IMG/VR virus record: IMGVR_UViG_3300047548_001236
Span: 186,001-250,000 of that record
Reading direction: 5' to 3' (one strand)
Length of the DNA stretch: 64,000 nt
Shown: positions 22,935-51,896 of the stretch, piece by piece
Position numbering within the stretch: the stretch's first letter is position 1
How the letters are laid out: each line of letters opens with the position of its first letter
Position numbers and translations under genes: made by a program
Notes under the pieces: generated by a model
The model's database searches: none
What the model saw: only the letters and a program-made list of their open reading frames with translations
What the model was told of the DNA's origin: nothing

Positions 22935-25088
22935 TCAAGCGGCCTCACTCTTACGATTGGTAAACTGTGTGTCAAACGCCTTGGTTTCTTTGTTGTAAAC
23001 AAGTTCGAGAACAGTCCCTTGGATATCGTTTTCGAGGATCATATTGACAATCAGCGGTTCGATGTTTGCAACAACATACCCCTGCAGACCACGAGCACCG
23101 TGACGAGGCTGATAGTGATCAGCACAGAATGCTTTGATGCATTCGTCTGAGTAGACAATCTCCACACCACTTTGTTTGTATGCCGACTTCAAGCCGTTCA
23201 GCTCACGCTTGACAATCTTTTCGATCGAATCCAGCCCAAGTCGATCAAAACATACGATGTTCTGCCGACCAGCGAAGCGGTTGAGGAATTCTGGACGATA
23301 GACGCTATCCAGCTCCACGTTAGCAAGACGCTCAGCCTCTTCTGGAGAAAGAGTCTCGTCGAGGAAGAACGTTTGACCGATATTGGTCGTCATGATCACC
23401 ATCGACTCCGAGAAGTTGACCGTGCGACCGTGGTTATCGGTCAGGCGACCATCCGACAGAATCTGCAGGAACAGGTCGAACACAGCAGGGTCGGCTTTCT
23501 CAATTTCATCAAACAGAATGATGCGGTGAGGGTTCTGACGCATAGCATTGGTCAGGATACCACCACGTTCGCTACCTTCATAACCAGCAGGAGCACCAAT
23601 CAGCTTTGCGACAGAGTGCTTTTCCATGTATTCCGACATGTCGAAGCGAGTCAGAGCAGATTCATCGTCCTTGAGAGCATGAGCCAATGCTTTACAGACT
23701 TCCGTCTTACCAGTACCAGAAGGGCCCATGATCAGGAACGCTGCTTGAGGCTTGCCACCATTACGACGGCCAATACGTGCGACTTTGATCGCGTTGGCAA
23801 TCTTGTGAATCACTTCCTCCTGACCAAACACACGAGCGTTCAGCAGAGCTTCTAGGTTGCGAAGTTTCACTTTCTCATCCTCATTCAGCTTGGAAACAGG
23901 AATGCCCGACAGACGGCTAAACTCAGCAAGCACTTTTTCTTTCGTCAGAGCCAGTTGAGAGTTGATCTGCTCAGTCAACATATCAAACTCGGCACGGTTC
24001 TCGTTGATCACAAGTTCGTACTGACGAATCTGATTGCGGAGCTCGCGGACTGCAGGAGATTCAAAGCCACCCGAAGCTGCAACGCTCGCAAACATCTGGA
24101 TGCGACGAGAGTTTGCATCGGCTTCAACGACATCCTTTGCAGGAGGATTCTCAGCTTCCTCTTTCTTGATAGCAGCAATTTGCTCCTCAAGATCGATGAT
24201 AGCCACCTCACCATCACGCTGCAGTTGGAATAGCTCTTTGATGCGAGCTTGCGTCTTTGCATACTCCTGATCAAGAGCAATGATACGAGGATCATCTTCC
24301 TTGACGCCAGATGCGAGAAGATACGTCACTTGTGGATGTCGCTTGTGTGCATCAAGACGGTACGTTGCAAGAGCACGGTCAAGCAGGTTGCCAGAACGTT
24401 CAGGCTGAGCGCGTGACAAGCTGGCGTCACGTGAACGATACTTGTTTGTCAACTCGATTGCGGTCAGAACTGCATCATCTTCAATACGGATGTCGTGGTG
24501 TTTTGTCAGACCAAGAGCATTCGAACGAACAATGTCAATCAGATCCTGACCAAATGGCTCGTTCAGATCAATGATCGTATAGCATTGCTTCATGTCCGAG
24601 TGAGCAGCAAGAATCATGTCCAAATCAGGATCACGAGCTTCGAGGATCACTTGCGTGTGACCAGCCTTGACGGAAGCATTGAGCGAGTTGATGAAGTGAC
24701 TGCAGCCGTTGTTGCGTGCAGCCTCGATGAAGTCCCGAGTGTCTTCGATGATCAGAATAGAATCAGGAGTGCGCTTGAGGATCGTCAGTACCCCATTGAA
24801 CCCCTTGTTGATCTCTTCGTGATTGCCCGAAGCAAACAGCTCATCAACTTTCAGCCAGAACAGTCGTTTAGAGATGATATCGAACGGAACGTTAGGATCG
24901 TTCTTAAGAGCCTGGAGACCCATCACAAGTGCCGAAGCGCCTACACCACCAGGACCGACCAGAATGACTGATGCGGCTTTATTCCGCATCAGTACAGAAG
25001 TCAGACGCTTCATATCGTCAGCACGCCCGACCAGTTTGAAGTCGGGGTACTGTTTCAGAAGCTCATTACCAGTAATCAGATACTGCAT
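22935..25088 (-). CDS. ClpB-like AAA+ ATPase (no N-domain; degenerate NBD1)
   Basis: NBD2 GPSGTGKT, FDMSEYMEKHSVAKLIGAPAGY, DEIEKA, RPEFLNR, GAR; NBD1 GPGGVGAS; coiled-coil middle domain. Confidence 0.9.
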   Translation of the reverse strand: MQYLITGNELLKQYPDFKLVGRADDMKRLTSVLMRNKAASVILVGPGGVGASALVMGLQALKNDPNVPFDIISKRLFWLKVDELFASGNHEEINKGFNGVLTILKRTPDSILIIEDTRDFIEAARNNGCSHFINSLNASVKAGHTQVILEARDPDLDMILAAHSDMKQCYTIIDLNEPFGQDLIDIVRSNALGLTKHHDIRIEDDAVLTAIELTNKYRSRDASLSRAQPERSGNLLDRALATYRLDAHKRHPQVTYLLASGVKEDDPRIIALDQEYAKTQARIKELFQLQRDGEVAIIDLEEQIAAIKKEEAENPPAKDVVEADANSRRIQMFASVAASGGFESPAVRELRNQIRQYELVINENRAEFDMLTEQINSQLALTKEKVLAEFSRLSGIPVSKLNEDEKVKLRNLEALLNARVFGQEEVIHKIANAIKVARIGRRNGGKPQAAFLIMGPSGTGKTEVCKALAHALKDDESALTRFDMSEYMEKHSVAKLIGAPAGYEGSERGGILTNAMRQNPHRIILFDEIEKADPAVFDLFLQILSDGRLTDNHGRTVNFSESMVIMTTNIGQTFFLDETLSPEEAERLANVELDSVYRPEFLNRFAGRQNIVCFDRLGLDSIEKIVKRELNGLKSAYKQSGVEIVYSDECIKAFCADHYQPRHGARGLQGYVVANIEPLIVNMILENDIQGTVLELVYNKETKAFDTQFTNRKSEAA

Positions 25089-25103: not shown

Positions 25104-26768
25104 TCAGAAATTGAACGGACGCTTGACTTTGGCAACGGGTTCGTCATTAGCTGCCTTTTGATCAGCCCCCATGACAATATCCGCCACCACAGCCTTGGAT
25201 TCAAGGACAGTCTGTGCGACTTCCTCAGCAGTTTTCTGCATCACTTCCAGATTCTCACGCATGGTTTGAATACCATTACGAGTGAACTCGGTAGCAACCT
25301 TGTTGACTTCGCCATACTGAGCCAGGCTCTCGATAGCCCGAACCAGATCGTTGTTGCGCTCTTGGTAGCCCATAGCAATCCGCATCGACTCCTTCTGAGC
25401 GATAACGTCAGTGTTGTTGGCCATCGCGTTCAGAGTTTCAGCTGTCATGGCATTCGACTCGGCGATAGCAGCAGCGCCGACCGCTTGGATGACAGTCGAC
25501 AGACGATCAGCAACACCAGCAACACCACGCGCGTGCATGTCACGAGCCATCTGGATCTGTTGCTGGTTCGCGTCCCGCATGTTCTTGATGCGGATCGAAG
25601 CCGAGGTCAGATCAGCGACAGTTGCAGTCGTATCGACTGCCGAAACTTCCAGCATCTGGATGTGTTCGTCAAGATCACGCTGCTTGGTTTCACGAGTGAG
25701 CTTCTGCACCATATTCTCGTTTTCACCAGGAACGAGAATCTGCTCACGCATCTTTTTGTTCTCGTTTTCAGCGCCTTTGACACCTTCACCAAGAATTGCA
25801 TAGATAAAGCTCATCTGGCCGTTCGCATCTTCCAGATTCTTCGTCTGATCGCCCATGTGAGCAAGGTGACCACGAATCGTCTCGATCTTTTCCTTGGAGG
25901 TCTGAACGAAGTTGACCGCCGACTTGATCAGATTCTCAGACCGCTTCTGGTGATCTTCGGTCGCCAGGTTCAGCATGTCTTTCAGCTTCGCCTTTGCTTC
26001 TTGGTTGGTGATCTTCGATTCAACCGTGGTCTGGTTAGCACGAGCAGCTTCCGCCTCTGCCGCAATCTTTTGCAGCTCAGCAGCAGCATTTTCCATTGCG
26101 ACTTTGTTGCGAGCAATCTTCTCGACCGATTCGGCTTTGATGCCACCGAAGCCAAAGAAGCCCTTGTTCTGCTCTTCGACACGGTTCTGAGCTTTCAGTT
26201 CATCGATGCGAGATTGCACCTTGGTGATCTGCTCATCCAGTTCACGCTGACGCTGAGCAATCGCTTCCTGACGCTTCTCTTCATCTTTGATTTCACGGAA
26301 AGCATCCAGAGTCTGATTCTCGGCACGCAGAACATGCAAAGCATCGATGATATCCGTCAGAGGCTTCATGTCGTTTTCAAAATCGATCAGAGCTGTATTG
26401 ATGTCCTCGAACACTTGCTTAAGCGTTGCGAAATTTTTGGTGTCGGACATCTTGATGATCTGCGTCGCCATCGCTTCACGCTCAGCTTGCAGATACTCTT
26501 TAAACAGATCGAACGCTTTGACACGCTCACGATTCTCTTCACGAGTACCAGCAAACGTCAGCAGCTTCGTAACGGCTGCTTGCTTGGCTTCCGGCGACAG
26601 AGCTTCATCAAAAATCGTCTTGAAGAAGGGATTGGTTTCAATATTCGCAAAGCGAGAATCCTTCGCCTTGGTTTCCTCCTTCTGCTTCGCAGTCGGAGTT
26701 GCACGACCCCGAACGGCCAGGATTTCTTCCAGCTGCTGCTGACGGGAAAGTTGTGCAGATGCGCTCAT
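25104..26768 (-). CDS. long coiled-coil protein, possibly TelA/KlaA-like
   Basis: all-helical composition, KGFFGFGG motif; upstream of the ClpB-like gene. Confidence 0.5.
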   Translation of the reverse strand: MSASAQLSRQQQLEEILAVRGRATPTAKQKEETKAKDSRFANIETNPFFKTIFDEALSPEAKQAAVTKLLTFAGTREENRERVKAFDLFKEYLQAEREAMATQIIKMSDTKNFATLKQVFEDINTALIDFENDMKPLTDIIDALHVLRAENQTLDAFREIKDEEKRQEAIAQRQRELDEQITKVQSRIDELKAQNRVEEQNKGFFGFGGIKAESVEKIARNKVAMENAAAELQKIAAEAEAARANQTTVESKITNQEAKAKLKDMLNLATEDHQKRSENLIKSAVNFVQTSKEKIETIRGHLAHMGDQTKNLEDANGQMSFIYAILGEGVKGAENENKKMREQILVPGENENMVQKLTRETKQRDLDEHIQMLEVSAVDTTATVADLTSASIRIKNMRDANQQQIQMARDMHARGVAGVADRLSTVIQAVGAAAIAESNAMTAETLNAMANNTDVIAQKESMRIAMGYQERNNDLVRAIESLAQYGEVNKVATEFTRNGIQTMRENLEVMQKTAEEVAQTVLESKAVVADIVMGADQKAANDEPVAKVKRPFNF

Positions 26769-27265: not shown

Positions 27266-27273
27266 TATAAATA
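27266..27273 (+). promoter_or_regulatory. T4-type late promoter for the plus-strand operon
   Basis: TATAAATA 30 nt before ATG 27304. Confidence 0.85.
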
Positions 27274-27303
27274 GGTCATGTGGAATTTTGTTAGGGCCTT
27301 AAC

Positions 27304-28944
27304 ATGTTGAAATTTAAGCAGTATATCGTAGAATATCTGACGGACGAGCAAAGAGCTCGCTATAAGCAGTACAAGATGACACCGAAAGCTCGTCGTGACA
27401 CCGACCATTTTTTTGGTAAGGGTGTCGATGAGGTTCACGGTGAGATTGCCAACGACGACAAGTCAGAGATCCACACACGTCTGGAGAATCACCTTGGACA
27501 GCCTGTGTCACATGAAGACTACAAGCGCGGGGCAATTAAAGACAAGTATGGGCGTGATGTTAAGATCGGACGTTTGATCAAAGACAGCTCGCTGAGAAAT
27601 CAGTTTGACCAGGATCCGTCGAGGAAGCTGGAACGGGTAATTCACAAGACACGAACTGTTCGAGGAACAGAAGTAGCTGGGCAAACAAATCCTGTCCCTG
27701 ACGCTAACCACCCGACAGGTCACTCGTGGCATGATAGTAGCTGTAAGAACCTAGAGAGTGGTATCAACCGTCATTATCTACCCAAAGAAATCCAGCATGG
27801 AACGGTAGTGCATTTTGTCCACGATAGTAACGGACAAGAGATCTACAGGGCTACACTTCAACCCCACCATAACGAAAGTGGACGAGTGGCTTATAGTGTC
27901 GATGCAGAATATGGTATCAAACACCCACATTTTACAGCTGACGCTCACCGTGTTGCAACTGCTCTTAGTGGACAGTCTCGTGGTAACATTGTGCATGAGA
28001 AGCATGATGATGTTTACAATGACAATGGTGAGGAAACTATGATTCATCCAAAAGCCAGCGACGCGCAGTTGATGAAGCATCTTAAGACAGGTAATTGGTC
28101 TACAAAGTATGCCGTGCTCAAGCACCCAAATCTAAATCACAAGCATTTGATGCAGGCTGTTAAAGATGAGGACGAAGATAACGTGATGACCGCGTTGTCA
28201 CATCCAAATATAACGCACGAACACATTGAAAAGGCTATGAACAGACCTGATGCAAGCGACGAGTTGATAGGCATTGCCGCCAGCAACCCTAAAGCGACGT
28301 TAGAGCAACTGCAAAAAGGGCTTTCGTACCGTAGTGCTAGTGTTAGATATGAGGCAATGAAAAGTCCTAACGTGACGCCGGATATGTTGTCGAAGCTACA
28401 AGATGATAAGGATCGCCGAGTACGTTCTGCGGTTATAAAGCATCCTAATGCAGACGTATCTCATTTGAACCGCGCTATCAATGACCACGACTGGATGGTG
28501 CGAGCTGCCGTCGCCCGTAACAGCAAAGCACAGCCTCATCATCTTGATCAACTTGTGAACGACGAAGACAGCGATGTGGTCCACGCAGCGTCAAACAACC
28601 GTAACCTTTCCGCGGATCATATCACAAAAATCATGAAAAGCCCATTTGCTGACGCAAAGAAAAACGTGTTGTATCACAATAACTTCAATCCATCCCATCT
28701 CGGTATTGCAATACACGATAAGGATCCTGAGATCAGTATGTTGGCAGCTACCAATCACAGAGATATGTTGACACCAGAACATCTTGAGCATCTCGCTGAC
28801 CACAATAGCTGGCGTGTTAGACATACTGTCGCCAAGCACGAGCTAACGCCTATTAAAACACTCAAAAAACTAACAAAAGACGAAGACCCTGATGTTGTCC
28901 TTGCTGCTGGACAAAACCTGAAAAACAGTGAGAACCGTAAATGA
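27304..28944 (+). CDS. putative internal head protein, paralog 1 (conserved N-domain + HEAT/LRV-like repeats)
   Basis: MLKFKQYIVE N-terminus; EVAGQTNP...HSW...SCKN...HGTVVHF domain; ~24-aa HPN...D....VR repeats. Confidence 0.75.
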   Translation: MLKFKQYIVEYLTDEQRARYKQYKMTPKARRDTDHFFGKGVDEVHGEIANDDKSEIHTRLENHLGQPVSHEDYKRGAIKDKYGRDVKIGRLIKDSSLRNQFDQDPSRKLERVIHKTRTVRGTEVAGQTNPVPDANHPTGHSWHDSSCKNLESGINRHYLPKEIQHGTVVHFVHDSNGQEIYRATLQPHHNESGRVAYSVDAEYGIKHPHFTADAHRVATALSGQSRGNIVHEKHDDVYNDNGEETMIHPKASDAQLMKHLKTGNWSTKYAVLKHPNLNHKHLMQAVKDEDEDNVMTALSHPNITHEHIEKAMNRPDASDELIGIAASNPKATLEQLQKGLSYRSASVRYEAMKSPNVTPDMLSKLQDDKDRRVRSAVIKHPNADVSHLNRAINDHDWMVRAAVARNSKAQPHHLDQLVNDEDSDVVHAASNNRNLSADHITKIMKSPFADAKKNVLYHNNFNPSHLGIAIHDKDPEISMLAATNHRDMLTPEHLEHLADHNSWRVRHTVAKHELTPIKTLKKLTKDEDPDVVLAAGQNLKNSENRK

Positions 28945-30686
28945 AAAGATTCAAGTCGTTTCTATTGGAATATCTGACCGATAAACAGCGTGAGCGCTAT
29001 CAGCATATTGAAATGACACCTAAAGCACGTGCCGACTCCGATCATTTCTTTGGACAAGGAAATGATGAGGTGCATGGTAGTTTACATTCGATGACCGACA
29101 AATCCGAGATCCACAGGAAGATTGAAAATCACCTCGGACAAGAAATATCACACGAAGACTATAGAGCAGGTCTTGCTAGAGACCATCTAGGTAGACAGAC
29201 GCGTATCGGACGATTGATAAAAGACGATTCGTTGAGGAACGAGTTTGCGAAGGATCCTACAAGAGAAGGATCGCGTAGCGGTCAATCGCAATATACAACA
29301 AGAACAGTTCGTGGAGTGGAAGTTGCAGGACAGACAAACTCTGTACCTGATGCACAACATCCAAAAGGCCATTCGTGGGGTAACATAAGCTGTAAGAACA
29401 ACGAGACGGGAATAAACAAACACTATCTCGAAGATGAAATCAAGCACGGTACCGTTACTCACTTTGTTAAGGATCACAACGGCCAGGAGATCTATCGTGC
29501 AACACTACAACCTCATCATAACGATGAGGGTCATGTTGCGTATGCAATTGATTCGGAATATGGTATCAAGCACCCATCATTCACCGAAGACGCAAAAAGA
29601 GTAGCAGCCAAACTGTCTAATGCTGATCATACGAATGGTCTGTTTAGAAAGCACGGTAAAGTTTACCATGATAGTGAAGATAGTTATATGCTGCATCCTA
29701 ATGTATCATCAGAACAGCTTCACAAGTATATAGCGGCTCCGTCAGACGAATATGACGATCGCAAGCTACTCGTGAAAAGATTGGCAATAATGCACCCCAA
29801 CTCTGACAGCACTCATATCCAACGAGTGCTGGATCAAAAGGATACCCATCCTGTACTTTTGAACCGAATTGCAAGCCACCCTAAAATAACAGATGAACAA
29901 ATCAGCCGTCTATTGGACAATCCGCGCAACGGTGTTCGAAGAACTGTTGCTTCTAATCCTAACATTAAAGATCATCACATACGCAAGGCGCTGGCAGATA
30001 CGGATAACACCGTTCGTGCGAACATCATGTCAAATCCATCGACACCTACCCATCATATAATTAATGGAACAAAAGACCGCAGCTCGTTGGTTAGAGCTAC
30101 TGCATATGCAAATTCGAAGCTTCCGAAAGAACACCTTATCAAAGGTTTGGACGACGAAAGTGATCAGGTAAAAGCTACTGTTGTGGGAAATCGTTCGATA
30201 TCAGGTCAACATTTGACAGATGCGTTAAGAAATCCTAGCGAGCATGTAAGAGCTGCTGTATTTGACAATCCAAATGCAACTCCAGCTCATATAGAGCTTG
30301 CAAAGAAAGACCCTCATTGGCAAGTACAAATGAGAGCAGCCTCTCATAAAAATGCCACGAGCGACCAGCTACACGATTTCATTGATCACGGTTTCAGAGA
30401 AACCCATGTTAGTGTAGCAAAGAACCCTAATGCAAATATCAGCCATCTTAATAAACTGTATGACGTTGGTAACACGGATACAAAATTTGATGTGCTCGCT
30501 CACCCCAATGTCGATTCCAACCTTATTCACAAAGTAGTGAGCAACGACGCAGAAACGGACGATATTAAATATCATGCTCTAAAGCATCCAAATGCAACAG
30601 TTGAAAACCTTAAATGGGCTTCGCGTAATTCAGCGAGTCCGTTCCTCAGAGACGCTGCCCGTAAAATACTTGGAGCTAGAACATGA
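28941..30686 (+). CDS. putative internal head protein, paralog 2
   Basis: MKRFKSFLLE; same N-domain; repeats; ATGA coupling. Confidence 0.75.
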   Translation: MKRFKSFLLEYLTDKQRERYQHIEMTPKARADSDHFFGQGNDEVHGSLHSMTDKSEIHRKIENHLGQEISHEDYRAGLARDHLGRQTRIGRLIKDDSLRNEFAKDPTREGSRSGQSQYTTRTVRGVEVAGQTNSVPDAQHPKGHSWGNISCKNNETGINKHYLEDEIKHGTVTHFVKDHNGQEIYRATLQPHHNDEGHVAYAIDSEYGIKHPSFTEDAKRVAAKLSNADHTNGLFRKHGKVYHDSEDSYMLHPNVSSEQLHKYIAAPSDEYDDRKLLVKRLAIMHPNSDSTHIQRVLDQKDTHPVLLNRIASHPKITDEQISRLLDNPRNGVRRTVASNPNIKDHHIRKALADTDNTVRANIMSNPSTPTHHIINGTKDRSSLVRATAYANSKLPKEHLIKGLDDESDQVKATVVGNRSISGQHLTDALRNPSEHVRAAVFDNPNATPAHIELAKKDPHWQVQMRAASHKNATSDQLHDFIDHGFRETHVSVAKNPNANISHLNKLYDVGNTDTKFDVLAHPNVDSNLIHKVVSNDAETDDIKYHALKHPNATVENLKWASRNSASPFLRDAARKILGART

Positions 30687-32110
30687 AACCATTCAAATCT
30701 TTCCTTCTTGAATACTTGACAGATGCACAACGTCAGCAGTATAGTCAGTATAAAATGACTGATAAAGCTCGTGCAGACACAGATCACTTTTTTGGTGTTG
30801 GCAACGATAAAGTTACTGGTGCCTTGGGTCATACTACCGATAAATCCGAGATCCATCGAAAAATTGAAAAACACCTTGGTGCTGAAATATCTCACGATGA
30901 CTACCGTGCAGGCATTACGAAAGACAAATACGGTCGTGATGTTCGTATTGGCAGGGTGATAAAAGACGATAAGCTGAAAGCAGAATACGCAAAAGACCCA
31001 ACAAGGGAAGGAGCAAAGGTTGGCTCGCAATTCACAACCTCTACCGTGAGAGGGATTGAAGTTGCCGGACAGACTAATCCTGAACCAAACGCTGAGCATC
31101 CGAAAGGACACTCGTGGAGAGATCTTAGCTGTAAGAACGTCACCTCTGGAATTCAACGTCATATATTAGCCAACGAAATCGAACGTGGGACTGTTGTCCA
31201 CTTTGTCCACGATCGTAACGGACAAGAAATTTACAGGGCTACATTGCACCCTCACCACAACCAAGAGGGCCATGTGGCTTATGCTGTCGATTCGGAATAT
31301 GGTATCAAGCACCCAGCTTTTATGAAAAGTGCTCGCGACACTGCAGAGAAACTATCAGGTGAGTTAAAGGGAAGCCCTGTTTTTGAGAAAGACCGCGAGG
31401 TTTATGATGATAGTGGCGTAAGCCATATGATCCACCCGTCTGTTAGCAGTGAAGGGTTGACAAATCATCTAAAGTCGTCAAAGTTTACTGAACGTTATGC
31501 TGTATTGAGACACAAAAACGTTACGCCTGAGCACATTGAGATGGCGGTTAACGATTCAAATAGACACGTGAGACGTGAAGTAGCAAAATCACTTTTGTTG
31601 AAGCCTGAACATATCACAAAGATTATGGATAACCCAAATGAGAATAGTAGAGTGAAGATGGAGGCTGTCCAGAATCCTAATGCAACTGCTGAACATATAT
31701 CAAAAGCATTAGACTCTGATGATCATGATGTCCGTCTTTATGCCATGAGAAATCCAAACGTTAATGCAGATCACATATCAAAAGCGTTGGACGTGGACCA
31801 ACCACATCATATTCGTCAGATGGCGTTACAACACCGAAAAGTCACGCCTTCACATATAGCAAAGGTTCTCAGCCATAACCCAAGAGTACTAGATAGAAAC
31901 ACTCTTGCTATACAAGAGCAGGCAGCCGCACATCCAAATGCATCGAAAGAAAATATTGATCAAGCGTTACAACACCGCGAGCATACCGTGAGAGAGTTAG
32001 CGATAAATAACAGAAATGCAACGGACGAGCAAATCAGCCGGGGGTTGGACGATCCTCACCCGATGGTCAGAATATCAGCTAGATATGCAAAGAAAGCAAG
32101 AGAACAATGA
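30683..32110 (+). CDS. putative internal head protein, paralog 3
   Basis: MKPFKSFLLE; same N-domain; repeats. Confidence 0.75.
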   Translation: MKPFKSFLLEYLTDAQRQQYSQYKMTDKARADTDHFFGVGNDKVTGALGHTTDKSEIHRKIEKHLGAEISHDDYRAGITKDKYGRDVRIGRVIKDDKLKAEYAKDPTREGAKVGSQFTTSTVRGIEVAGQTNPEPNAEHPKGHSWRDLSCKNVTSGIQRHILANEIERGTVVHFVHDRNGQEIYRATLHPHHNQEGHVAYAVDSEYGIKHPAFMKSARDTAEKLSGELKGSPVFEKDREVYDDSGVSHMIHPSVSSEGLTNHLKSSKFTERYAVLRHKNVTPEHIEMAVNDSNRHVRREVAKSLLLKPEHITKIMDNPNENSRVKMEAVQNPNATAEHISKALDSDDHDVRLYAMRNPNVNADHISKALDVDQPHHIRQMALQHRKVTPSHIAKVLSHNPRVLDRNTLAIQEQAAAHPNASKENIDQALQHREHTVRELAINNRNATDEQISRGLDDPHPMVRISARYAKKAREQ

Positions 32111-34311
32111 TTAGATTCAAAACATTCATTAACGAAGACGTTTTACTCGAGAACCGTATCGAGTTCCTCAAGCAACAAAACCCAACAATCGACACGACTC
32201 ACGACACCTTGGCTAAGCACAAGGACGCTGGGGCAATCATTGACCACTTTGCTAAGAAGGCGGACCCAACGCCAACCAAGGCTCATACTCAGTGGATCGT
32301 CAATCAATATAAGAAGCAGACAATCCGTCAGGAAGATGCCCCTCAAATCAAGTCAACGCTGAATGATTTTGAAACAGTGAAGCCTCGCCTAGAAAAGAAG
32401 GACCTCAACCAATACAAGGATATTGGTGAGTTGAGAGACGCTGTCGCTACTCAGAAGAGCCAAGCAGAGAAGGTCGTGAAGGCAAAGAAAACAACCGCTG
32501 CAAACAAGTCTGCTGATCTTGAAAAGATGTACGATGAAGACGGTGTGACTGGATATAAAATCCCCAATAAAGAGTCGAGCATCAGGAACTACGGTCCTGC
32601 TGGCGAGGTGAAACAGACACACTGGTGCACCGCTGCCAACTCAGGCAACAACATGTTCAACCACTATAAAGGTGGCAAGTATACCATGCACTTCCCTAAT
32701 GGAGAAGTGCTGCAATTCCACCACCAATCCAATCAAATCATGGACAAATACGATCGTCGCGTTGAAGAAGGCGATCCACGTTTTGCACCGTATGAGCACC
32801 ACATCACCAAATTCATCCACCAAACCAAGCCCCTCGAGAGCGATTCAAAGATCGATAGGTTCCACCACTATGAACCATACGAGATAGATGATGCGATTGC
32901 TGGATACAAGAAGAGGTTGAGTGATAGCAACAATGATCCTACTGCCAGTGGGGTCAGCTACCACCACACAACAAAAAATCTGACAGACATTAGCGAAAAG
33001 GCTAAGCTAAGTGACAAGCAATTCGATGCGATCCATTCTCTTCCTATTGGTAAAGATTACCTTAACCGACCAGAGGGCGTTCCACTCAGCCTGAGCAAAA
33101 ACAAAAAGCTGACACATGAGCAGGTGGGTAAGTTGCTAGGCGCCCATGACGAGAAGGTGCTTGATCATCACGAAGAGCAGCTTGCACAGAACCCTGTTGT
33201 GAAGGACGAACATATTGACGCATTGCTCAAATCACCGAGACTCAGCAAAGAAGCATTCCACTCGCTGGCCAACAATCCTAACTTGAAACAACATCACATC
33301 GACGCTCTTATCAAAGATCCAGAGACGCATGATAAGCTGGGTAGCAACCACGCGATCACTTTGACCAAGGATCATCAGGATCAGATAATAGATAGTGGCA
33401 AGTGGAAGGAAGGGTTTGCACATCGCAGTGACCTGCACCCTGATACCGTCGAGCATTTGCTGGGAAGTGGGTATGGAGCACACATCCATACGCACCTGGT
33501 CAACAACCCACATGTTGAGATGGATGATCGCCAGCTTCGTAGTTTGCATGCGCAGCACAATAGAGGCGAGTCTGCAATTTCTGGAGCCATCTTCGATTCT
33601 CCAAAGACGTCTCCAGAGACGAGAGAGCATGTGTTCAATACTCATATGGATCATCTTGAAAGAAGCGGTGGAGGTTCTAGCCCTGCTCTTGATACGATGA
33701 TCCGTTCCAAGCATTTCACAAAAGACCACCTCGATCGAGTGCTGGATGTTGCTGACAAAACAGATAAACAACCAGGTGCAACGAACACAATGAGAATATA
33801 CGCTTCGAGATATCTCAAGGCATCACCTGCTCAGCTTGATCGTCAGGTCAACGCTAGCAAGCAAGGCACCGCTCCAGTAGGTTATCTGCTTGACAATAAG
33901 AACCTGAAACCCGAACACTTGAAAACGTTGTTCAACGCTGCAGCTTCTAGCAAAACGGAGTATGAAAAGGAAAAGGTGATGGAGCATCCATCCATCAACG
34001 GGGATGTTCTCCATCACGTGTTCGATAGTGGACATAGCTGGGATAGAACACGTGTTCTACACCACCCAAAAGTTCAAATGTCTCACTTCCAAAAAGCTAT
34101 GGATGTGGGTCAATCCTTGCATGGCGCGATATCGTCTTCACCGAGTGCTCCGCCTTCGACTCTGAGTAAGCTGGCTGACTCGCCGTTCTCGTTCGTGCGT
34201 CAAAACATTGCGAGTCACAAGAACACACCTCAAGAAACCCTTGCTAACCTAGCAAACGATTCAGCCGAAGAGGTGTCGTCCATTGCTAAGAAGCGTTTGA
34301 AGTTGAAATAA
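32107..34311 (+). CDS. putative internal head protein with a different N-domain (WCT motif) + helical repeats
   Basis: MIRFKTFINE; THWCTAA...MFNHY...QFH..S.Q.MD; C-terminal repeats. Confidence 0.7.
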   Translation: MIRFKTFINEDVLLENRIEFLKQQNPTIDTTHDTLAKHKDAGAIIDHFAKKADPTPTKAHTQWIVNQYKKQTIRQEDAPQIKSTLNDFETVKPRLEKKDLNQYKDIGELRDAVATQKSQAEKVVKAKKTTAANKSADLEKMYDEDGVTGYKIPNKESSIRNYGPAGEVKQTHWCTAANSGNNMFNHYKGGKYTMHFPNGEVLQFHHQSNQIMDKYDRRVEEGDPRFAPYEHHITKFIHQTKPLESDSKIDRFHHYEPYEIDDAIAGYKKRLSDSNNDPTASGVSYHHTTKNLTDISEKAKLSDKQFDAIHSLPIGKDYLNRPEGVPLSLSKNKKLTHEQVGKLLGAHDEKVLDHHEEQLAQNPVVKDEHIDALLKSPRLSKEAFHSLANNPNLKQHHIDALIKDPETHDKLGSNHAITLTKDHQDQIIDSGKWKEGFAHRSDLHPDTVEHLLGSGYGAHIHTHLVNNPHVEMDDRQLRSLHAQHNRGESAISGAIFDSPKTSPETREHVFNTHMDHLERSGGGSSPALDTMIRSKHFTKDHLDRVLDVADKTDKQPGATNTMRIYASRYLKASPAQLDRQVNASKQGTAPVGYLLDNKNLKPEHLKTLFNAAASSKTEYEKEKVMEHPSINGDVLHHVFDSGHSWDRTRVLHHPKVQMSHFQKAMDVGQSLHGAISSSPSAPPSTLSKLADSPFSFVRQNIASHKNTPQETLANLANDSAEEVSSIAKKRLKLK

Positions 34312-34322
34312 GAGAGCCAAAC

Positions 34323-35297
34323 ATGGAATACGAACTCACATCTCAGAAGCTCGACAACAACACCCATCTAGTGAAGAACAAGCACACGAACGAGCCAGTC
34401 GCCATACTGAAAAGAACTGGCGGCTACAAGCGAAATGAAGTCAAGTCGGAATGGCACCCCGACTACAAGCTGTTGCACCCTGAGGTTCACGAAAACCTTC
34501 TGACGAGAAACTTCCACAAGCCACATGACAGCGTTTCTGATGCTGTTAGCAACATCACATACATATCGCAAGATCACGCATTTGGTAAAAACTCGCGAAT
34601 CGATCCTATCAAAACACGGTATGCCGGCGATTTTGATACCAAGACACCTTATGGCCAAGATACGAAAGGGCATAAGTGGCATGTGTTGGACGATGACGGG
34701 AAACACGTCGCTTCTATAACGTCATTCCACGGACCAAACCAAATTCACCGCGAGTCTCCTGTAAGTGTCGGTTGGGTCAAATCGTTCAACGATAGCGTTC
34801 CCGATAGTGTCAAAGAAGCGGCAAATTCAAAGCACGGAGGTCAGACTCTTTATGCGACGATGAACCGTATTCGTTACATGATGGACAACAAGGGTAAAGA
34901 GCCTCGCTTTGTCGGTACGCATGTCGACCCTGCGTCTAAGACTAAGATGTTCAAAACGAATCTACCACCAGAAGAAGCGTCGAAGGCGTATGAAGAGCAT
35001 CTAGCAAAGAGGCTAGGAAACGGCTACACGTTTACACGTCACGGACCCACGCTGTTTACAGCAGAGAAGCCAGCGCAAGGAAGGTACGATAGAACTTACC
35101 AACACCACGTTATAGCTATGCCTGGTCAGCTTCATCATATCGAGTCTTCGCTCCATCACCCAGACTACGATACAACGACCAACAAGAACAAGGAAGTTGT
35201 TGAGTCGTATATGCTGAATCCTAATAAGAGACCTTACCCGTTGACGCTCGAAGAGCATCTCAAGGCACAACGTTTCCTCCTTAAAAAGGCTAGATAA
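34323..35297 (+). CDS. His-rich late hypothetical protein
   Basis: ORF within the late operon, same composition; no N-terminal targeting motif. Confidence 0.7.
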   Translation: MEYELTSQKLDNNTHLVKNKHTNEPVAILKRTGGYKRNEVKSEWHPDYKLLHPEVHENLLTRNFHKPHDSVSDAVSNITYISQDHAFGKNSRIDPIKTRYAGDFDTKTPYGQDTKGHKWHVLDDDGKHVASITSFHGPNQIHRESPVSVGWVKSFNDSVPDSVKEAANSKHGGQTLYATMNRIRYMMDNKGKEPRFVGTHVDPASKTKMFKTNLPPEEASKAYEEHLAKRLGNGYTFTRHGPTLFTAEKPAQGRYDRTYQHHVIAMPGQLHHIESSLHHPDYDTTTNKNKEVVESYMLNPNKRPYPLTLEEHLKAQRFLLKKAR

Positions 35298-37391
35298 ATG
35301 CGCAGCTTCAAATCGTATCTGATAGAGTATATAACCGACAGCCAACGTGAACGTTACAAAAACGTCCACATGACCGACAAAGCTCGTGCCGATACCGATG
35401 AATTTTTCGGTGTCGGTAACGACAAGGTTCACGGCGAAATCGAACACGGTGAAAAGTCCGAGATACATAAGCAACTCGAGAACCATCTCGGGCGAGAGGT
35501 ATCTCATGAAGAATACAACAAGGGAACCGTGAAAGACAAACACAACCGTGATGTGAAGATCGGACGTTTGATCAAGGACAATGACCTACGTATTCAGTTT
35601 GACAAGGACCCATCTCGTCAGATTGCAAAAGCACCCACTCTGAAAACAACGACCGTTCGCGGTGTTGAGGTTGCAGGGCAGACAAACCCTGTACCCAATG
35701 CTGAACATCCTGAGGGACATTCGTGGAAGGGTTATAGCTGTAAGAACATTGAGTCAGGAATCAATAGGCGTTATCTCGAGCCAGAAATCAAGCACGGGAC
35801 TGTTGTTCACTATGTACATGATCACAACGGCCAAGAAATATATCGAGCAACGCTTCACCCGCACCATAACGAACATGGTGATGTTGCATATGGCTTGGAT
35901 GCTGAGTATGGTATCAAACACCCGAAGTTCACAGCTGATGCCCAGCGCGTCGCGAAGGAGCTCTCTGGTGAATATAAGCCAGGAACGTTCTGGAAGCACC
36001 CGGAAGTATACAACGACAACGGCAAGAGTAATATGTTCCACCCTGGCATATCCGAAGGGCATATTTCAGATATCTTAACACACGGTTCAACCAGTGACAA
36101 ACATGATATCATGATGCACCCTGCTTTCACAAGCGATCACGTGTCCAAGGTTCTGAAATACGAACCAAATGGAGCACTGAGAGGACACGCTTTATTGAGA
36201 AGCGATCTTGTGACACCAGAACACATCACGACAGCTTTGAACGATCCCGACGACCACGTTAAGCGTATGGCTCTACACAACGGGTCCAAAATTACAGCGG
36301 ATCATGTTAAACGAGCTCTTGAGCCTGACATGCCAGCGGACATTCGCCGTCATATGGCTAAAAACCGCCATGCAACACCTGAATTGCTTTCACAAGTTAT
36401 CAAGCACGATCCGAACTCGGAAGTTGTGCAAACGGCTGTAATGAACAAGAATGCTACCCCAGAACATATAACTCAGGCTTTACAACATCCTGACGTTTAC
36501 GTGAGACAAGCGGCATTGACGCGTTCTGACCTCGTCAATGACAGCCATCTGCACACCGCTGTCCGTGACTCCAGTCCTCGTATCACAACACATGCAGCTT
36601 TTCATCACAAAGCTAAACCAGAACATCTCGACTACATTATGGATCATGGACATAACAACGCACTCGAAGCTATGTTCCACCGTGAAAGCAACGCAACGTC
36701 TGAACACATTGGCAAAGCTCTTCGTAGCACCGATCCAAGATTCACGACAACTATAAAAGAGTTCGCTGCATCACATCCCAACGCATCTTCGGAAAATATC
36801 ATGGATGCGTTGAAACTAAACAACCCACGCATCACCTATGATGTGATCGATAATCACGATAATCTCAGCAAAGAGCATATGGATCACATAGTGAAGCATA
36901 CGCCTGATGATGACGATATGATATCCGCAATATCTCGTCACCCATCGTTGCGTGCCGAGCACATTACGCATCTTCTCGATAGACCGGGCATATCAAAGAA
37001 CATATTCGCAAGTCGTATATACAAACAGCTAGCCAACCACCGGAATCTCGCTCCGGAACATATGGAGAGACTGGCCAAGCACGACAACTGGAATGTTCGA
37101 AATATCATTGCCAATCGTCACGATGCTCCTGCTCATGTTCTCTCACATATCGTCAGACACGATCCAGAAGAAGCAAACAGATATGATGCTATCATGAACG
37201 ACAACACTCATCCGGACGATCTGGAGCATGCTGTCAAACATGATGAAAGCGTATTCAATAAGGAAGCTGCACTGCGCAACTTCAATACGCCGGTACATGC
37301 AATCAAGCACGTTTTGGATACATATAAGACAGGCGATCTGAGAAAACAAGCCATTAGCTCTCTGCGTCAAAGAGGAATACAAGCCGAATGA
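35298..37391 (+). CDS. putative internal head protein, paralog 4
   Basis: MRSFKSYLIE; same N-domain; longest repeat array. Confidence 0.75.
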   Translation: MRSFKSYLIEYITDSQRERYKNVHMTDKARADTDEFFGVGNDKVHGEIEHGEKSEIHKQLENHLGREVSHEEYNKGTVKDKHNRDVKIGRLIKDNDLRIQFDKDPSRQIAKAPTLKTTTVRGVEVAGQTNPVPNAEHPEGHSWKGYSCKNIESGINRRYLEPEIKHGTVVHYVHDHNGQEIYRATLHPHHNEHGDVAYGLDAEYGIKHPKFTADAQRVAKELSGEYKPGTFWKHPEVYNDNGKSNMFHPGISEGHISDILTHGSTSDKHDIMMHPAFTSDHVSKVLKYEPNGALRGHALLRSDLVTPEHITTALNDPDDHVKRMALHNGSKITADHVKRALEPDMPADIRRHMAKNRHATPELLSQVIKHDPNSEVVQTAVMNKNATPEHITQALQHPDVYVRQAALTRSDLVNDSHLHTAVRDSSPRITTHAAFHHKAKPEHLDYIMDHGHNNALEAMFHRESNATSEHIGKALRSTDPRFTTTIKEFAASHPNASSENIMDALKLNNPRITYDVIDNHDNLSKEHMDHIVKHTPDDDDMISAISRHPSLRAEHITHLLDRPGISKNIFASRIYKQLANHRNLAPEHMERLAKHDNWNVRNIIANRHDAPAHVLSHIVRHDPEEANRYDAIMNDNTHPDDLEHAVKHDESVFNKEAALRNFNTPVHAIKHVLDTYKTGDLRKQAISSLRQRGIQAE

Positions 37392-39319
37392 TAAAGTTCA
37401 AATCGTTTTTGTTGGAATATCTAACAGACAAGCAAAGGGAACGGTATAAAGACGTTCGCATGACCGATAAGGCTCGCGCTGACACGGACCATTTCTTTGG
37501 AGCTGGGAATGACAAGATACACGGCGAGATCGAGCATGACGACAAGTCAGAAATTCATCACCAGCTCGAAGCCCATCTAGGCCAGCCTATTTCTCACGAG
37601 GATTACAAAAAAGGAACGACTCTCGATCGTCACGGTCGAGAAGTGAAGATTGGCCGTCTGATTAAGGATAACGACCTTCGCAATCAGTTTGACCAAGATC
37701 CATCACGTAAGATAGCCAAAACGTCAACGCTCAAAACCACAACGGTACGTGGTACGGAAGTAGCTGGCCAGACAAATCCTGAGCCAAACGCAGAGCATCC
37801 AAACGGCCACTCGTGGCACGACATAAGCTGTAAAAACGTTGAGAATGGCATAAACAAGCATTATCTTGATAAAGAGATCCAACACGGCACCGTTGTCCAT
37901 TTTGTTCACGACCACAACGGGCAGGAAATCTACCGAGCAACATTACACCCACATCACAACGATGAGGGTCATACCATCTACTCCGTCGATGCGGAATATG
38001 GTATAAAACACCCCAACTTCACACAGGATGCTCATCGTGTCGCGAGCCAGCTTTCTGGCGAGTATAAAAGGGGAACATTTGTCAAAAACCGCAATGTGTA
38101 TAACGACAATGGAATGAGGTATGCTCTTCACCCAGCAGCACCTGGAGCTGAGGTTGATAAAGAAACCCACGAAGAACTCGCAAAACCGTACGAAAAGCAG
38201 AGTGCTGAGAAGCTGAGAGTGCTGCTAACACATCCAAATATTTCAGGCGAAACGTTGTCACACGTTCTACACACTACTCAGGAGACGCCTGCAGACGTAT
38301 GGGGTCTTGCAGCTAAACACCCAAATCTGAAAGGTGAACACCTAGAAAAAGCGTTGAACAGCACACATAGTCACACAGCGACTTCGGCTCTAAAGAATCC
38401 TAATGTTACAGCCGAACATCTGCATAAAGTGTTGGACGCTCCAGATACCAATCGTAACTGGGCTCAAAAACGAGCTGTGTTCGAATCCCCTGCTGTCAAT
38501 TCGAGCCACATTGAGAAAGCTCTCAAGACCGATCCTAGCGATGATTTGTTTCATGCTGCAGCACAACATCCTAAGACAACATCTGCGCAGTTGAACGTTG
38601 TCGCTCAGCATTACCCATACATTGCTCTCCAACACAGAAACGTCAAGCCATCCAACATCGATAAATGGTTGGATAGTGACGATGGTCGTCTACGTCAAGG
38701 AGCTGCTCTGCATAAAGCGGCTACTGATGCTAACCTCACAAAAGCTCTGTCACAGGATCCTGAAACGCGATCAGGCACTGTTTGGGCTGCTCTAGGCAAC
38801 CGTAACATAAAACCACATCACATCGAACCGTTTCTGAATCACAGTAACAGAGAACTCCGCATTGCGGCTGCTGAAAGTCCTGGAATCTCTCCTGAGCAGA
38901 TTGATAAAGTTCTTGACCACGAGAAAGATCGGCATGTTTTAAGTACATTGATCCACAGAACCAATACCAAGGTTACAGATGCACATCTACGCAAGGTTCT
39001 GAACGGTGATTATCCGATGAGAGTTAAAGAAAAGGTAGCAGAGCATCCGAACATATCTTCTGATACGATCAACAAGGCGTTGGATTTTGCTCATCAAAAC
39101 GATAATGGGAAGATGGCGCTCGACGCTCTTAGTCACGACCACGTAACCTCAGACAACCTACACCACGCGTTGAAACTCGACAATCCTCGCATCGAGAGCG
39201 ACGTCTTGTGGCATAATCAGGCTACACCAGAACACTGGGAATACGTTGCCAAGCACAGTAAAAGCCCAGGTAACGTTGCTGTTGCCGAGCGGTTCCTGGC
39301 AAACGGTAGAAGAGGATAA
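37388..39319 (+). CDS. putative internal head protein, paralog 5
   Basis: MIKFKSFLLE; same N-domain; repeats. Confidence 0.75.
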   Translation: MIKFKSFLLEYLTDKQRERYKDVRMTDKARADTDHFFGAGNDKIHGEIEHDDKSEIHHQLEAHLGQPISHEDYKKGTTLDRHGREVKIGRLIKDNDLRNQFDQDPSRKIAKTSTLKTTTVRGTEVAGQTNPEPNAEHPNGHSWHDISCKNVENGINKHYLDKEIQHGTVVHFVHDHNGQEIYRATLHPHHNDEGHTIYSVDAEYGIKHPNFTQDAHRVASQLSGEYKRGTFVKNRNVYNDNGMRYALHPAAPGAEVDKETHEELAKPYEKQSAEKLRVLLTHPNISGETLSHVLHTTQETPADVWGLAAKHPNLKGEHLEKALNSTHSHTATSALKNPNVTAEHLHKVLDAPDTNRNWAQKRAVFESPAVNSSHIEKALKTDPSDDLFHAAAQHPKTTSAQLNVVAQHYPYIALQHRNVKPSNIDKWLDSDDGRLRQGAALHKAATDANLTKALSQDPETRSGTVWAALGNRNIKPHHIEPFLNHSNRELRIAAAESPGISPEQIDKVLDHEKDRHVLSTLIHRTNTKVTDAHLRKVLNGDYPMRVKEKVAEHPNISSDTINKALDFAHQNDNGKMALDALSHDHVTSDNLHHALKLDNPRIESDVLWHNQATPEHWEYVAKHSKSPGNVAVAERFLANGRRG

Positions 39320-39320
39320 G

Positions 39321-39344
39321 AAAAAAGCCCCTTTCGGGGCTTTT
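39321..39344. terminator. bidirectional intrinsic terminator
   Basis: AAAAAAGCCCC-tttc-GGGGCTTTT between convergent genes. Confidence 0.88.
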
Positions 39345-47901: not shown

Positions 47902-49347
47902 TTAGTACCTCCCAGTTTCACGAGGAATGTATTCGCTTTCCATCAAAGCAGCTCGCTTGCGAATTGCTTCGAACGTGTCTTCGATCAACAGCTCACCGTT
48001 CTTGAACACGGTCCGCAGAATGTTTTGCTTGGATACCTCCTCGGGCAGCGTTCTGAAACCGCAAGAACCAATACCACACTGGTATTCGAGAGCAAGACGG
48101 CCTTTTTTGGACTGCTTGCCCTTGTCAGTGATCGGGTCTTTACTGAAACCTTCCCACTCACCGTTGTTGATACGAATGGCCGAAGCCTTCATCGCATATT
48201 TCAGCGAATCGCGGTTCCAAGCCTGCAGAAGACCACCGCCCATACCGAAGGCGATGTTATCGGCACTGAACCCAGCAGCTTTGAGGTTCTCAAGGATAAT
48301 GGGCAACGTGTGTTCGTTGATACCATCTCCCTGAATCACTCGGATGTAAGGAGGAAGGACTTTATATCCCTTACTGTTGATCGTGTATCCAAACTTCTCA
48401 GCAAGGATCTTAACGACCTCGACAGGAACTGTTTCGGGATCACCACTGTCAGGACGTACCACCAAGGTGCCGCCCATGTTGACGATCTTATCTTTCAGCT
48501 TGTCGCCCCAAAGATCACGGCATGCCGCATAGATGTCAAAGCTGTCCGAGACACATGCAAGGATCTTGCCAGGCCCACCAAACTTGTCCAGCATGTTTTC
48601 GAATGCCTTAACTTCGTTTTCACGGCCCCAAGAAGTAATCGTGCTGTGTTCAGAAGCGGGAATTGAGAATCCAACAACCTGATCAGTGTTGTAGTACGCC
48701 ATCACCCCTTCAAGAGCTTCGAACGTGTCGGTGCCCATGAAGTTGACAAGGTGTCCCATACCACCAAGGATTGCTGTTTCACCCGAGCTGGCACCACGAG
48801 CACCAAAGTCGTGCAGTTTGAACGTCAGTTGATCCATCACAGGAACATCCGACGTTTCGTGTAGGGCTTTAGCAATAAGCACCTTCATCTTGCGGCTCTT
48901 GGTCGCAACAGTGGAAGGATACCATACACCACGCAGCAGAGCGGTTTCAATGTACGAGGTCAGCCACCACAGACGAGGATCGGTGTTGACAACCTGCACT
49001 TGAACGTTGTGAGTTTCCATGAACGTTCCTTCCGGAACAGCCTGGATCTCGAGAGGGAGAAGCCCACCATACTCTTTGACGATGATCTCCCAACCTTCAC
49101 GGTTGAAAGGCAGGCCATGTGCAGTAACAATACGCTCTGCACGATCGATATCCTTCATCGTGATCGGAGTCAGTAGGTAGTCTTTGATGAATGCTTGCAG
49201 TCCAAAGAATACCGACATATCTTCACCACCACGTGACTCGATGTACGAGCTGATGTGAGTGGTTCCCTTGGGATATTGCATCCATTGGCTGAACTTGTAG
49301 CTGTCGGTGCGAACGATGGTACTGATAAAGCTAAGTACAGTCTTCAT
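47902..49347 (-). CDS. nadV: nicotinamide phosphoribosyltransferase (NAMPT)
   Basis: TDSYK.S...QYP, WYPSTVAT, LHDFGARG, SIPASEHS, VSDS, RPDSGDP, QGDG, FGMGGGLLQ. Confidence 0.95.
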   Translation of the reverse strand: MKTVLSFISTIVRTDSYKFSQWMQYPKGTTHISSYIESRGGEDMSVFFGLQAFIKDYLLTPITMKDIDRAERIVTAHGLPFNREGWEIIVKEYGGLLPLEIQAVPEGTFMETHNVQVQVVNTDPRLWWLTSYIETALLRGVWYPSTVATKSRKMKVLIAKALHETSDVPVMDQLTFKLHDFGARGASSGETAILGGMGHLVNFMGTDTFEALEGVMAYYNTDQVVGFSIPASEHSTITSWGRENEVKAFENMLDKFGGPGKILACVSDSFDIYAACRDLWGDKLKDKIVNMGGTLVVRPDSGDPETVPVEVVKILAEKFGYTINSKGYKVLPPYIRVIQGDGINEHTLPIILENLKAAGFSADNIAFGMGGGLLQAWNRDSLKYAMKASAIRINNGEWEGFSKDPITDKGKQSKKGRLALEYQCGIGSCGFRTLPEEVSKQNILRTVFKNGELLIEDTFEAIRKRAALMESEYIPRETGRY

Positions 49348-49399
49348 AATAGAAACTCCTTCTATTGTTTGTGTTATGCCAAGACTCTCTGTCCTGGGC
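49348..49399 (-). promoter_or_regulatory. AGAGA/GGAGU two-hairpin leader motif, copy A (nadV)
   Basis: CCAGGAC-AGAGA-GUCUUGG, short linker, AAUAGAA-GGAGU-UUCUAUU-AUG. Confidence 0.75.
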
Positions 49400-49404
49400 T
49401 TTGT

Positions 49405-49704
49405 TTAAGCAGCGGCTGGTTTAGCCTCCTGCCATTCTTTAGTCCACCGATCCAGTTCTTTGTAACCAGTGGGCCAATCATTCAAACCGAGGTCGGTCAG
49501 CTTACCGCAGCAGGGGCATTTGAAACATACTGCAGGGTCGCGATAACCCCAAGTAACTTCTCCACCCGTCCCCGGAAAATACTTGAGATCGTTGAACTCA
49601 ATCTCCAACAGAGCGTTACAACCTTCGCCACCATTACCCCATGCAGTACAACGATGGCGCATAGCCCATTTTTCGCCAACTCGGCCAGGTTCGATGATTT
49701 TCAT
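49405..49704 (-). CDS. Zn-ribbon-like hypothetical protein
   Basis: C...C and CPCC motifs; GGAG RBS. Confidence 0.6.
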   Translation of the reverse strand: MKIIEPGRVGEKWAMRHRCTAWGNGGEGCNALLEIEFNDLKYFPGTGGEVTWGYRDPAVCFKCPCCGKLTDLGLNDWPTGYKELDRWTKEWQEAKPAAA

Positions 49705-49716
49705 ATTATGTTCTCC

Positions 49717-50866: not shown

Positions 50867-50929
50867 GTTCTTCGCGGTAGTACCAATACCCAAGAACTCT
50901 ACGATAAACAGTTTAGGAGCATCGCAGCT

Positions 50930-51649: not shown

Positions 51650-51654
51650 TCAAA

Positions 51655-51894: not shown

Positions 51895-51896
51895 TA

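Follow-up and report, generated by a model that had tools for sequence, protein, structure and literature searches.

Why would a phage set seven tightly packed plus-strand genes among early genes that run in the opposite direction, and what would the products of such an operon do? The question is raised by positions 27266-39343 of the DNA analyzed here, a stretch of 64,000 nucleotides (the window) that comprises positions 186001-250000 of the IMG/VR record UViG_3300047548_001236, a metagenomic contig of 282,855 bp. We propose, with a probability of roughly 0.6, that the operon codes for internal head proteins of a T4-like jumbo phage, which would be tagged for the head, cut by a gp21-type protease, released together with the DNA and act as solenoid binders. 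A first-pass annotation of the window had already suggested a late operon of capsid-targeted proteins, and this suggestion held. It is carried by a leader that agrees with the capsid targeting sequence (CTS) of T4 at positions 4, 7, 8 and 10, by a protease and a scaffold of T4 type in the same genome, by the modular use of the leader and its predicted disorder, and by distant homologues of the N-terminal domain found in virions. Packaging of the operon proteins into the capsid is thus well supported in silico, as far as sequence and structure prediction can take it.

Organization of the Operon

The elements of the operon are given below with their positions in the window; “N-domain” denotes the N-terminal domain shared by genes 1, 2, 3, 6 and 7.

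27266..27273, plus strand: T4-type late promoter box TATAAATA, 30 nt 5′ of the ATG of gene 1.
27304..28944, plus strand: gene 1, 546 aa; leader MLKFKQYIVE, N-domain (about residues 11-250), LRV/HEAT-like repeats of 26 aa (above the gathering cut-off with HEAT, 39.7 bits, and with LRV, 38.9 bits).
28941..30686, plus strand: gene 2, 581 aa; leader MKRFKSFLLE, N-domain, repeats.
30683..32110, plus strand: gene 3, 475 aa; leader MKPFKSFLLE, N-domain, repeats.
32002..32009, plus strand: GATAAATA, which may be an internal late promoter; it has one mismatch to the consensus and stands about 100 nt 5′ of gene 4.
32107..34311, plus strand: gene 4, 734 aa; leader MIRFKTFINE, a different N-terminal domain of 330 aa, LRV repeats (26.9 bits).
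34323..35297, plus strand: gene 5, 324 aa; without leader, isoelectric point (pI) 9.25, no known domain.
35298..37391, plus strand: gene 6, 697 aa; leader MRSFKSYLIE, N-domain, repeats (HEAT 26.3 bits).
37388..39319, plus strand: gene 7, 643 aa; leader MIKFKSFLLE, N-domain (the one modeled, mean confidence 84), repeats.
39324..39343, both strands: hairpin resembling a bidirectional intrinsic terminator, AAAGCCCC-TTTC-GGGGCTTT, between the operon and convergent minus-strand genes.

The layout described by the first-pass annotation (a promoter box, seven tightly coupled plus-strand genes, a bidirectional terminator and minus-strand surroundings) was recovered with every element in its place. The seven genes are translationally coupled, with ATGA overlaps at four junctions and gaps of 11 and 0 nt at the remaining two. 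Together they code for 4,000 aa, 3,676 of which belong to leader-bearing products. A simple terminator scan did not list the hairpin at 39324-39343, and we folded it directly instead. It is GC-rich, preceded by an A-run and followed by a T-run, and its folding energy is -16.7 kcal/mol for the plus strand and -18.4 kcal/mol for the minus strand.

The N-Terminal Leader and the Capsid Targeting Sequence of T4

All six frames of the 64 kb were scanned for long open frames that begin with the motif M..[FYWLIM]..[FYW][ILVM].E. Six such frames and no more were obtained, all at the starts of operon genes, which confirms the start M-x-x-F-K-x-[F/Y]-[I/L]-x-E read earlier on six of the proteins. The open reading frames (ORFs) concerned stay open for only 0-10 codons upstream of their starts, and a seventh match in the window is a 4-codon fragment on the minus strand, broken by a stop. 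Gene 5 begins with MEYELTSQK. All six leaders have F at position 4 and E at position 10, with F or Y at position 7 and I or L at position 8.

Mutagenesis of the T4 CTS has linked residues 4 and 7 with targeting, and residues 8 and 10 with processing (PMC9026906; also PMC8442874). From the operon family, 163 members were selected by two features, a start residue at position 1 and E at position 10. Of these, 150 have F at position 4, 151 have F or Y at position 7 and 153 have L or I at position 8, while positions 2, 3, 6 and 9 are variable. Judged by these alignments, the conserved positions of the leader are exactly the functional ones of T4 (4 and 7 aromatic, 8 I or L, 10 E). The T4 sequence MKTYQEFIAE, which the first-pass annotation had ascribed to the T4 internal proteins in general, does open IPII and IPIII in the T4 record; for IPI the ascription fails, since this protein starts with MKTFKEF and has a leader of 19 aa. 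Relatives of gene 4 start with MKSYQSLLES or MKTYQSLLES, with five consecutive residues in common with T4.

In about 113 kb of this genome, only nine ORFs are headed by the leader. Six of them are the operon genes, and the other three encode a 626-aa paralogue, a 135-aa protein (MKTFKQFITE) and a 502-aa protein of the head module (MKKFRQIISE). In all transcription units with such ORFs, an xATAAATA box stands 33-45 nt 5′ of the first gene. The leader also occurs in related contigs. In one of them (L016, 1879-2682), MKTFKNFLAE followed by a run of Lys heads a 267-aa ADP-ribosyltransferase (PF03496, 32.9 bits at a cut-off of 23.4), which, from its sequence, is probably a packaged Alt-like enzyme; the leader likewise heads an L5-gp82-like protein and a weak methyltransferase match in related contigs. 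Overall, it is found on seven kinds of protein, otherwise unrelated, in this genome and the related contigs.

AlphaFold assigned a predicted local distance difference test (pLDDT) score below 50 to residues 1-8 of the N-domain model (mean 84, predicted template modeling score 0.77) and to residues 1-12 of the gene 4 model (mean 88), with a confident fold afterwards in both. In these models, the leader is predicted to be disordered. Its conservation, its presence on unrelated proteins and this predicted disorder argue for a detachable tag rather than a part of one fold.

The three leader-bearing proteins outside the operon can be described briefly. The 626-aa paralogue, the eighth member of the family, is encoded alone near topoisomerase II genes (L002 9992-11872, at about 45-47 kb of contig 3300047548_001236). 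It has a GTG start (VFGFKTFLLE) and the same orientation as the early genes, with CATAAATA 42 nt upstream. The 135-aa protein (L002 13463-13870, same genome; AATAAATA 33 nt upstream) has no homologue in cultured phages by tblastn and none in Pfam; it looks like small cargo of the internal-protein type, though it is acidic (pI 6.2). The 502-aa protein (L027 15750-17258, minus strand), preceded by TATAAATA, is encoded between the portal and protease genes, and its sole matches are PHROGs of unknown function. This is the slot in which T4 has its core proteins gp67 and gp68.

A T4-Type Head Module and Late Promoter Boxes in the Same Genome

The phage that carries the operon is a giant T4-like (jumbo) phage; contigs related to it are frequent in metagenomes. 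Its head module, reached within 18 kb to the left of the window, comprises genes for sheath, tube, Portal_T4, the 502-aa protein, an 85-aa protein, Peptidase_S77, the T4_CASP scaffold and Gp23. The protease, encoded at L027 14778-15452, belongs to the gp21 family (Peptidase_S77, PF03420; phrog_207, 4e-72), and the scaffold is of the gp22 type (PF25623, T4_CASP), encoded on the same contig as Gp23 and Portal_T4. Directly after gp23, in the place of T4 gene 24, we observed a 461-aa HNH/homing-endonuclease-like gene (L027 10852-12237, minus strand); no gp24-like vertex gene was seen in the head-module stretch covered. No near-identical DNA was found among cultured phages.

The box TATAAATA occurs five times in the window, against 0.81 copies expected by chance, and five copies were reached in 0 of 100 shuffles. 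The operon itself contains a single exact copy and one near copy, GATAAATA. In the head module, TATAAATA stands 18-45 nt 5′ of the genes for gp21, gp22 and the 502-aa protein, and GATAAATA stands upstream of the gp23 gene. The box before the protease, scaffold and 502-aa genes therefore marks head genes of this phage, as in T4. By the same sequence and its use before head genes, the copy at 27266 qualifies as a putative late (gp55-type) promoter. Matches resembling sigma-70 promoters numbered 18 in the operon versus 20.6 in shuffles; as this is no excess, they give no evidence for early promoters there.

A Conserved N-Domain Joined to Divergent Repeats

Genes 1, 2, 3, 6 and 7 are close paralogues. 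Their common N-domain of about 250 aa is 62-74% identical between them, and their repeat regions are 25-40% identical. The repeat unit consists of 26 residues (HPN-x-T-x-E-H-I-x-K-A-L) and is found in genes 1-3, 6 and 7 and in part of gene 4, and not in gene 5. The Pfam models for LRV/HEAT score above the gathering cut-off in genes 1, 4 and 6, just below it in genes 2 and 3, and do not match gene 7. On the basis of these tandem two-helix repeats and their Pfam matches, the cargo belongs to the LRV/HEAT alpha-solenoids. The five close paralogues are rich in His (7-9%) and near neutral.

Searches of PHROGs, Pfam and NCBIfam with all seven operon proteins returned matches to the repeats only, and searching the PDB by sequence with the operon proteins returned nothing. 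The N-domain has no match in Pfam, PHROGs or NCBIfam. Foldseek against the PDB gave nothing significant for it, only weak GNAT-like partial matches, which concern its second half (Foldseek E 0.08-0.5 over 50-85 columns; ESM Atlas template modeling score 0.33-0.41); no GNAT match was obtained at the sequence level by hmmscan. A PcfJ-like identity (PF14284), for which the ESM Atlas had given a lead of 0.82-0.87, was rejected: hmmscan up to an E value of 10 yielded no PcfJ match, neither for the two N-domains nor for the jumbo-phage homologues, and the literature on “PcfJ” offered only C. elegans plasmid names.

A profile of the N-domain collected 987 clusters at 50% identity (E <= 0.001). In members of this family, the domain almost always begins at residue 1, and in four of the five long members scanned it is followed by HEAT, LRV or DUF4116 repeats. 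Residues W143, S147 and C148 (W-x3-S-C) as well as D104, R183, Y204, Y238 and D240 are invariant from T4-like to jumbo-phage members. The number of paralogues in related phages ranges from 1 to 14. The related 40-kb contig IMGVR_UViG_3300044940_000646 (L003, L004) carries 14 tandem N-domain/LRV paralogues, which take up more than half of its length.

The 330-aa domain of gene 4 is mostly helical with a small sheet in the AlphaFold model, and Foldseek against the PDB gave nothing with an E value below 1. The gene 4 family comprises 79 homologues whose length stays at about 735 aa, and it appears to be single-copy; the gene 5 family comprises 32 homologues of about 320 aa. The order of gene 4 followed by gene 5 is kept in the related contig L006. 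Homology among the N-domain, the gene 4 domain and gene 5 was considered and rejected. The hhalign comparisons were not significant (E 0.076, 0.2 and 0.14), and we therefore treat the three as separate families.

Homologues of the N-Domain in Virions of Cultured Jumbo Phages

Homologues of the N-domain detected by tblastn (2e-7 to 5e-12) and Foldseek (1e-11 to 5e-15) are uncharacterized jumbo-phage proteins, 20-25% identical to the operon N-domain. They come from Dickeya phage JA29, the Erwinia Alexandra/Yoloswag group, Pseudomonas phage Lu11, Ralstonia phage RsoM2USA and Agrobacterium phage Atu_ph07, with tandem paralogues in Lu11 (0207-0209) and JA29 (178 and 179). Except for ORF132 of RsoM2USA, these homologues have a longer and different N-terminal extension, which lacks a T4-type leader. 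No LRV/HEAT match was found in their C-terminal regions.

For two of these phages, virion proteins have been analyzed by mass spectrometry. The mass computed for the Atu_ph07 homologue AUZ95153.1 is 55.10 kDa and that for its upstream neighbor 11.3 kDa, in agreement with the virion-table entries gp394 and gp393, respectively. Electrospray ionization tandem mass spectrometry of Atu_ph07 virions (Table S5) identified gp394 with 18 unique peptides and 41% coverage (PMC6102473 supplement). [quoted passage not shown] From the data on gp394 and ORF132, we conclude that members of the N-domain family are physically present in virions. ORF132 (L031 2468-4492) starts with MKTFKQFLNTLME, similar to T4 IPI, and AATAAATA stands 24 nt upstream. 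This start and box, as read from the DNA, suggest that tag and N-domain may also travel together outside the T4-like lineage.

Weighing the Evidence

Several observations speak against our proposal. The leader-bearing operon proteins have masses of 54-83 kDa and a pI of 6.7-8.8, versus the small basic internal proteins of T4 with a pI of 8.9-9.5. Small basic cargo is typical of IPI-III and not strictly defining, as foreign CTS fusions are packaged too. The proposed cut would be followed by Tyr or Asp, versus Ala in T4 IPI, IPII and IPIII. Throughout the N-domain family, an equally conserved YLTD comes directly after the leader, so that within this family alone the leader is not separable from the N-terminus of the domain itself. 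Gene 5 and the homologues of JA29, Lu11 and Atu_ph07 are without the leader. No catalytic or anti-defence domain was found in the operon proteins with Pfam, PHROGs, NCBIfam and Foldseek. Finally, the phage is known from a metagenomic contig alone.

The constant YLTD, together with the size and charge unlike those of T4 internal proteins, would fit late cytoplasmic proteins that are never packaged, with the decapeptide as a mere conserved start that could belong to the domain. We regard this as highly improbable, because the decapeptide pattern heads seven unrelated kinds of protein, including a head-module gene and an Alt-type ADP-ribosyltransferase, because it matches the T4 targeting sequence at the four functional positions and is predicted to be disordered, and because distant homologues are virion proteins. 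The main rival accepts packaging and assigns the proteins a structural role: they would form or organize an inner scaffold or DNA-spooling body of a large head, like the paralogous inner-body proteins of giant phages of the phiKZ type, instead of acting on the host. A genome of 283 kb needs a large head, the RsoM2USA homologue is among the ten most abundant excised bands of its virion, and the strong conservation of the N-domain and the absence of an enzymatic domain in Pfam and Foldseek searches would suit such a role. Sets of paralogues are also found among internal head proteins of giant phages (PMC5694885, PMC7411985). However, T4-type heads require no such body, the copy number varies from 1 to 14 among related phages, and the repeats have diverged to 25-40% identity versus 62-74% for the N-domains. 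Variable copy number and divergent repeats suit changing targets better than a fixed structural fit, and we judge the structural role rather unlikely.

It is likewise unlikely, in our estimate, that the N-domain is an enzyme, such as a GNAT-like acyltransferase or a Cys-dependent modifier, which the solenoid would steer to its substrate, so that the proteins would be injected modifiers like Alt. The weak GNAT-like matches to the second half of the domain (E about 0.1, template modeling score 0.33-0.41) speak for it, but none of them is significant, an acetyl-CoA-binding motif was not identified, and Pfam, NCBIfam and PHROGs give nothing. The invariant residues, W143, S147 and C148 among them, which T4-like and jumbo-phage members have in common, also speak for catalysis. 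In the wider N-domain family there is no invariant His, and thus no Cys-His pair.

Proposed Path of the Operon Proteins

For the preferred reading, that of tagged internal head proteins, the following sequence of events can be proposed. The operon would be transcribed late from the T4-type promoter TATAAATA, alongside the head genes. Six of the seven products would carry the 10-residue leader, whose aromatic residues at positions 4 and 7 would bind the scaffolding core of the prohead. The gp21-family protease would then cut after [I/L]-x-E (positions 8-10) and leave mature proteins starting at Y11 (YLTD...) in the head, where they would be kept until they exit with the DNA at infection. Late transcription, scaffold binding and cleavage at E10 are expected from sequence logic and T4 precedent. 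Taken together, we infer late timing, targeting, cleavage at E10, ejection and a binder function.

In such a scheme, the conserved N-domain with its W-x3-S-C core would provide a function common to all paralogues, and the divergent alpha-solenoid would bind the target. Taking the solenoid as the target-binding part, the paralogues would be pre-made binders against different host (or phage) partners. More tentatively, and with doubts of our own, we consider that the array could be a new class of injected effector repertoire, in which a shared N-module is joined to a fast-evolving solenoid “reader” and each paralogue neutralizes or redirects a different defence or housekeeping protein of the host before phage expression. 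With up to 14 copies in some phages, such a repertoire could be likened to the effector repertoires of cellular pathogens. Effectors injected in this way might constitute a system for counter-defence or host takeover.

Comparison with Known Systems

The internal proteins of T4 are the classic proteins delivered with phage DNA, and known roles are confined to a few small ones among them, e.g., IPI* against GmrSD. The operon resembles the T4 CTS system in the 10-residue leader (4 and 7 aromatic, 8 I or L, 10 E), the late promoter, the gp21-family protease with a T4-type scaffold, and the use of one leader for otherwise unrelated cargo. It differs in that its cargo is near neutral and of 54-83 kDa, whereas that of T4 is basic and of 8-20 kDa, in that this cargo consists of a novel N-domain and an alpha-solenoid, in having its paralogues in a single tandem array that is not on the strand of the early genes, and in the Tyr or Asp after the proposed cut, where T4 has Ala.

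T4 Alt is a head-packaged ADP-ribosyltransferase that is processed by gp21. As is proposed for the operon proteins, Alt is a large packaged protein (682 aa) with a short N-terminal propeptide ending in Glu, and its gene stands beside that of the gp30 DNA ligase; a further likeness is the leader-tagged PF03496 enzyme of a related contig. A kinship between the operon proteins and Alt was rejected (BLASTP E 0.38), and none of the seven proteins has a Pfam match to an ADP-ribosyltransferase catalytic domain.

With ORF132 of RsoM2USA, gp394 of Atu_ph07 and the proteins of Lu11, JA29 and the Erwinia group, the operon proteins share a homologous N-domain with the W-x3-S-C core. The ejection and inner-body paralogues of phiKZ and SPN3US are similar to what is proposed here in that they are internal to the head, are processed after Glu by a protease related to gp21 and pass into the cell (PMC5694885, PMC7411985, PMC9026906). 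They have other cleavage motifs and no TATAAATA late promoters and, going by the abstracts of these reports, are not solenoid repeat proteins; no sequence relation to the operon proteins was seen, with no comparison aimed at one. The MuF-fused “polyvalent” effectors also join a packaging module to variable cargo that is delivered with the DNA (PMC9503650). The operon module differs from them as a predicted cleavable peptide of 10 residues, and no MuF domain is found by Pfam.

That a short tag brings diverse cargo into T4-type heads is established, as is the variability of internal-protein loci (PMC3012670, PMC9026906). What is new here is the cargo family, which includes two domains without structural relatives, together with the size and solenoid build of this cargo and its expanding tandem array; we found no description of this family in the literature. 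A very large unannotated family (987 clusters) thus appears to use the T4 delivery route for cargo 5-10 times larger and in multi-gene arrays. If this is true, the known repertoire of pre-packaged phage weapons is wider, and the N-domain of about 250 aa and the gene 4 domain, neither of which resembles a solved structure, gain a biological context. It would also account for “hypothetical” virion proteins seen by mass spectrometry in jumbo phages, and would provide examples from nature of a 10-residue tag that carries large proteins, of use for phage-based protein delivery.

Genomic Surroundings of the Operon

The neighbors of the operon are all on the minus strand and include genes for a ClpB-like ATPase, RNA ligases, the gp30 DNA ligase and the Dda helicase. 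The T4 gp30-type ligase, whose best tblastn matches are 44.6% identical, is separated from the operon by three small genes, and in T4 the alt gene is likewise near gp30. Besides the Dda helicase and the ClpB-like ATPase, the window codes for two RNA ligases, one of them RnlA-like, for an RNase H-type exonuclease and for NAD-salvage enzymes.

A short way upstream of the operon, the early strand carries the gene for this ClpB/Hsp104-like double-AAA+ ATPase (22935-25088, minus strand; 717 aa, phrog_4871). A link between the unfoldase and refolding of injected proteins would be pure speculation. Between it and the operon, a 554-aa protein rich in Glu, Lys and Ala (25104-26768, minus strand) is coiled-coil-like by eye and has no PHROG match. 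Elsewhere in the window, the product of 5234-5698 (minus strand) matches Pfam Acb1, a family of anti-CBASS phosphodiesterases, and the adjacent ORF at 5710-6021 has a weak PAAR-motif match. The NAD-salvage cluster at 47902-52967 consists of a nicotinamide phosphoribosyltransferase, a fusion of nicotinamide mononucleotide adenylyltransferase and Nudix, and a second adenylyltransferase. It is split by a homing endonuclease gene (50858-51649, plus strand) with a TATAAATA box of its own. A further TATAAATA (13152-13159, minus strand) stands 27 nt 5′ of a RuvC-like resolvase gene (12562-13125), which, by analogy with T4 gene 49, would fit a resolvase that is associated with packaging and expressed late.

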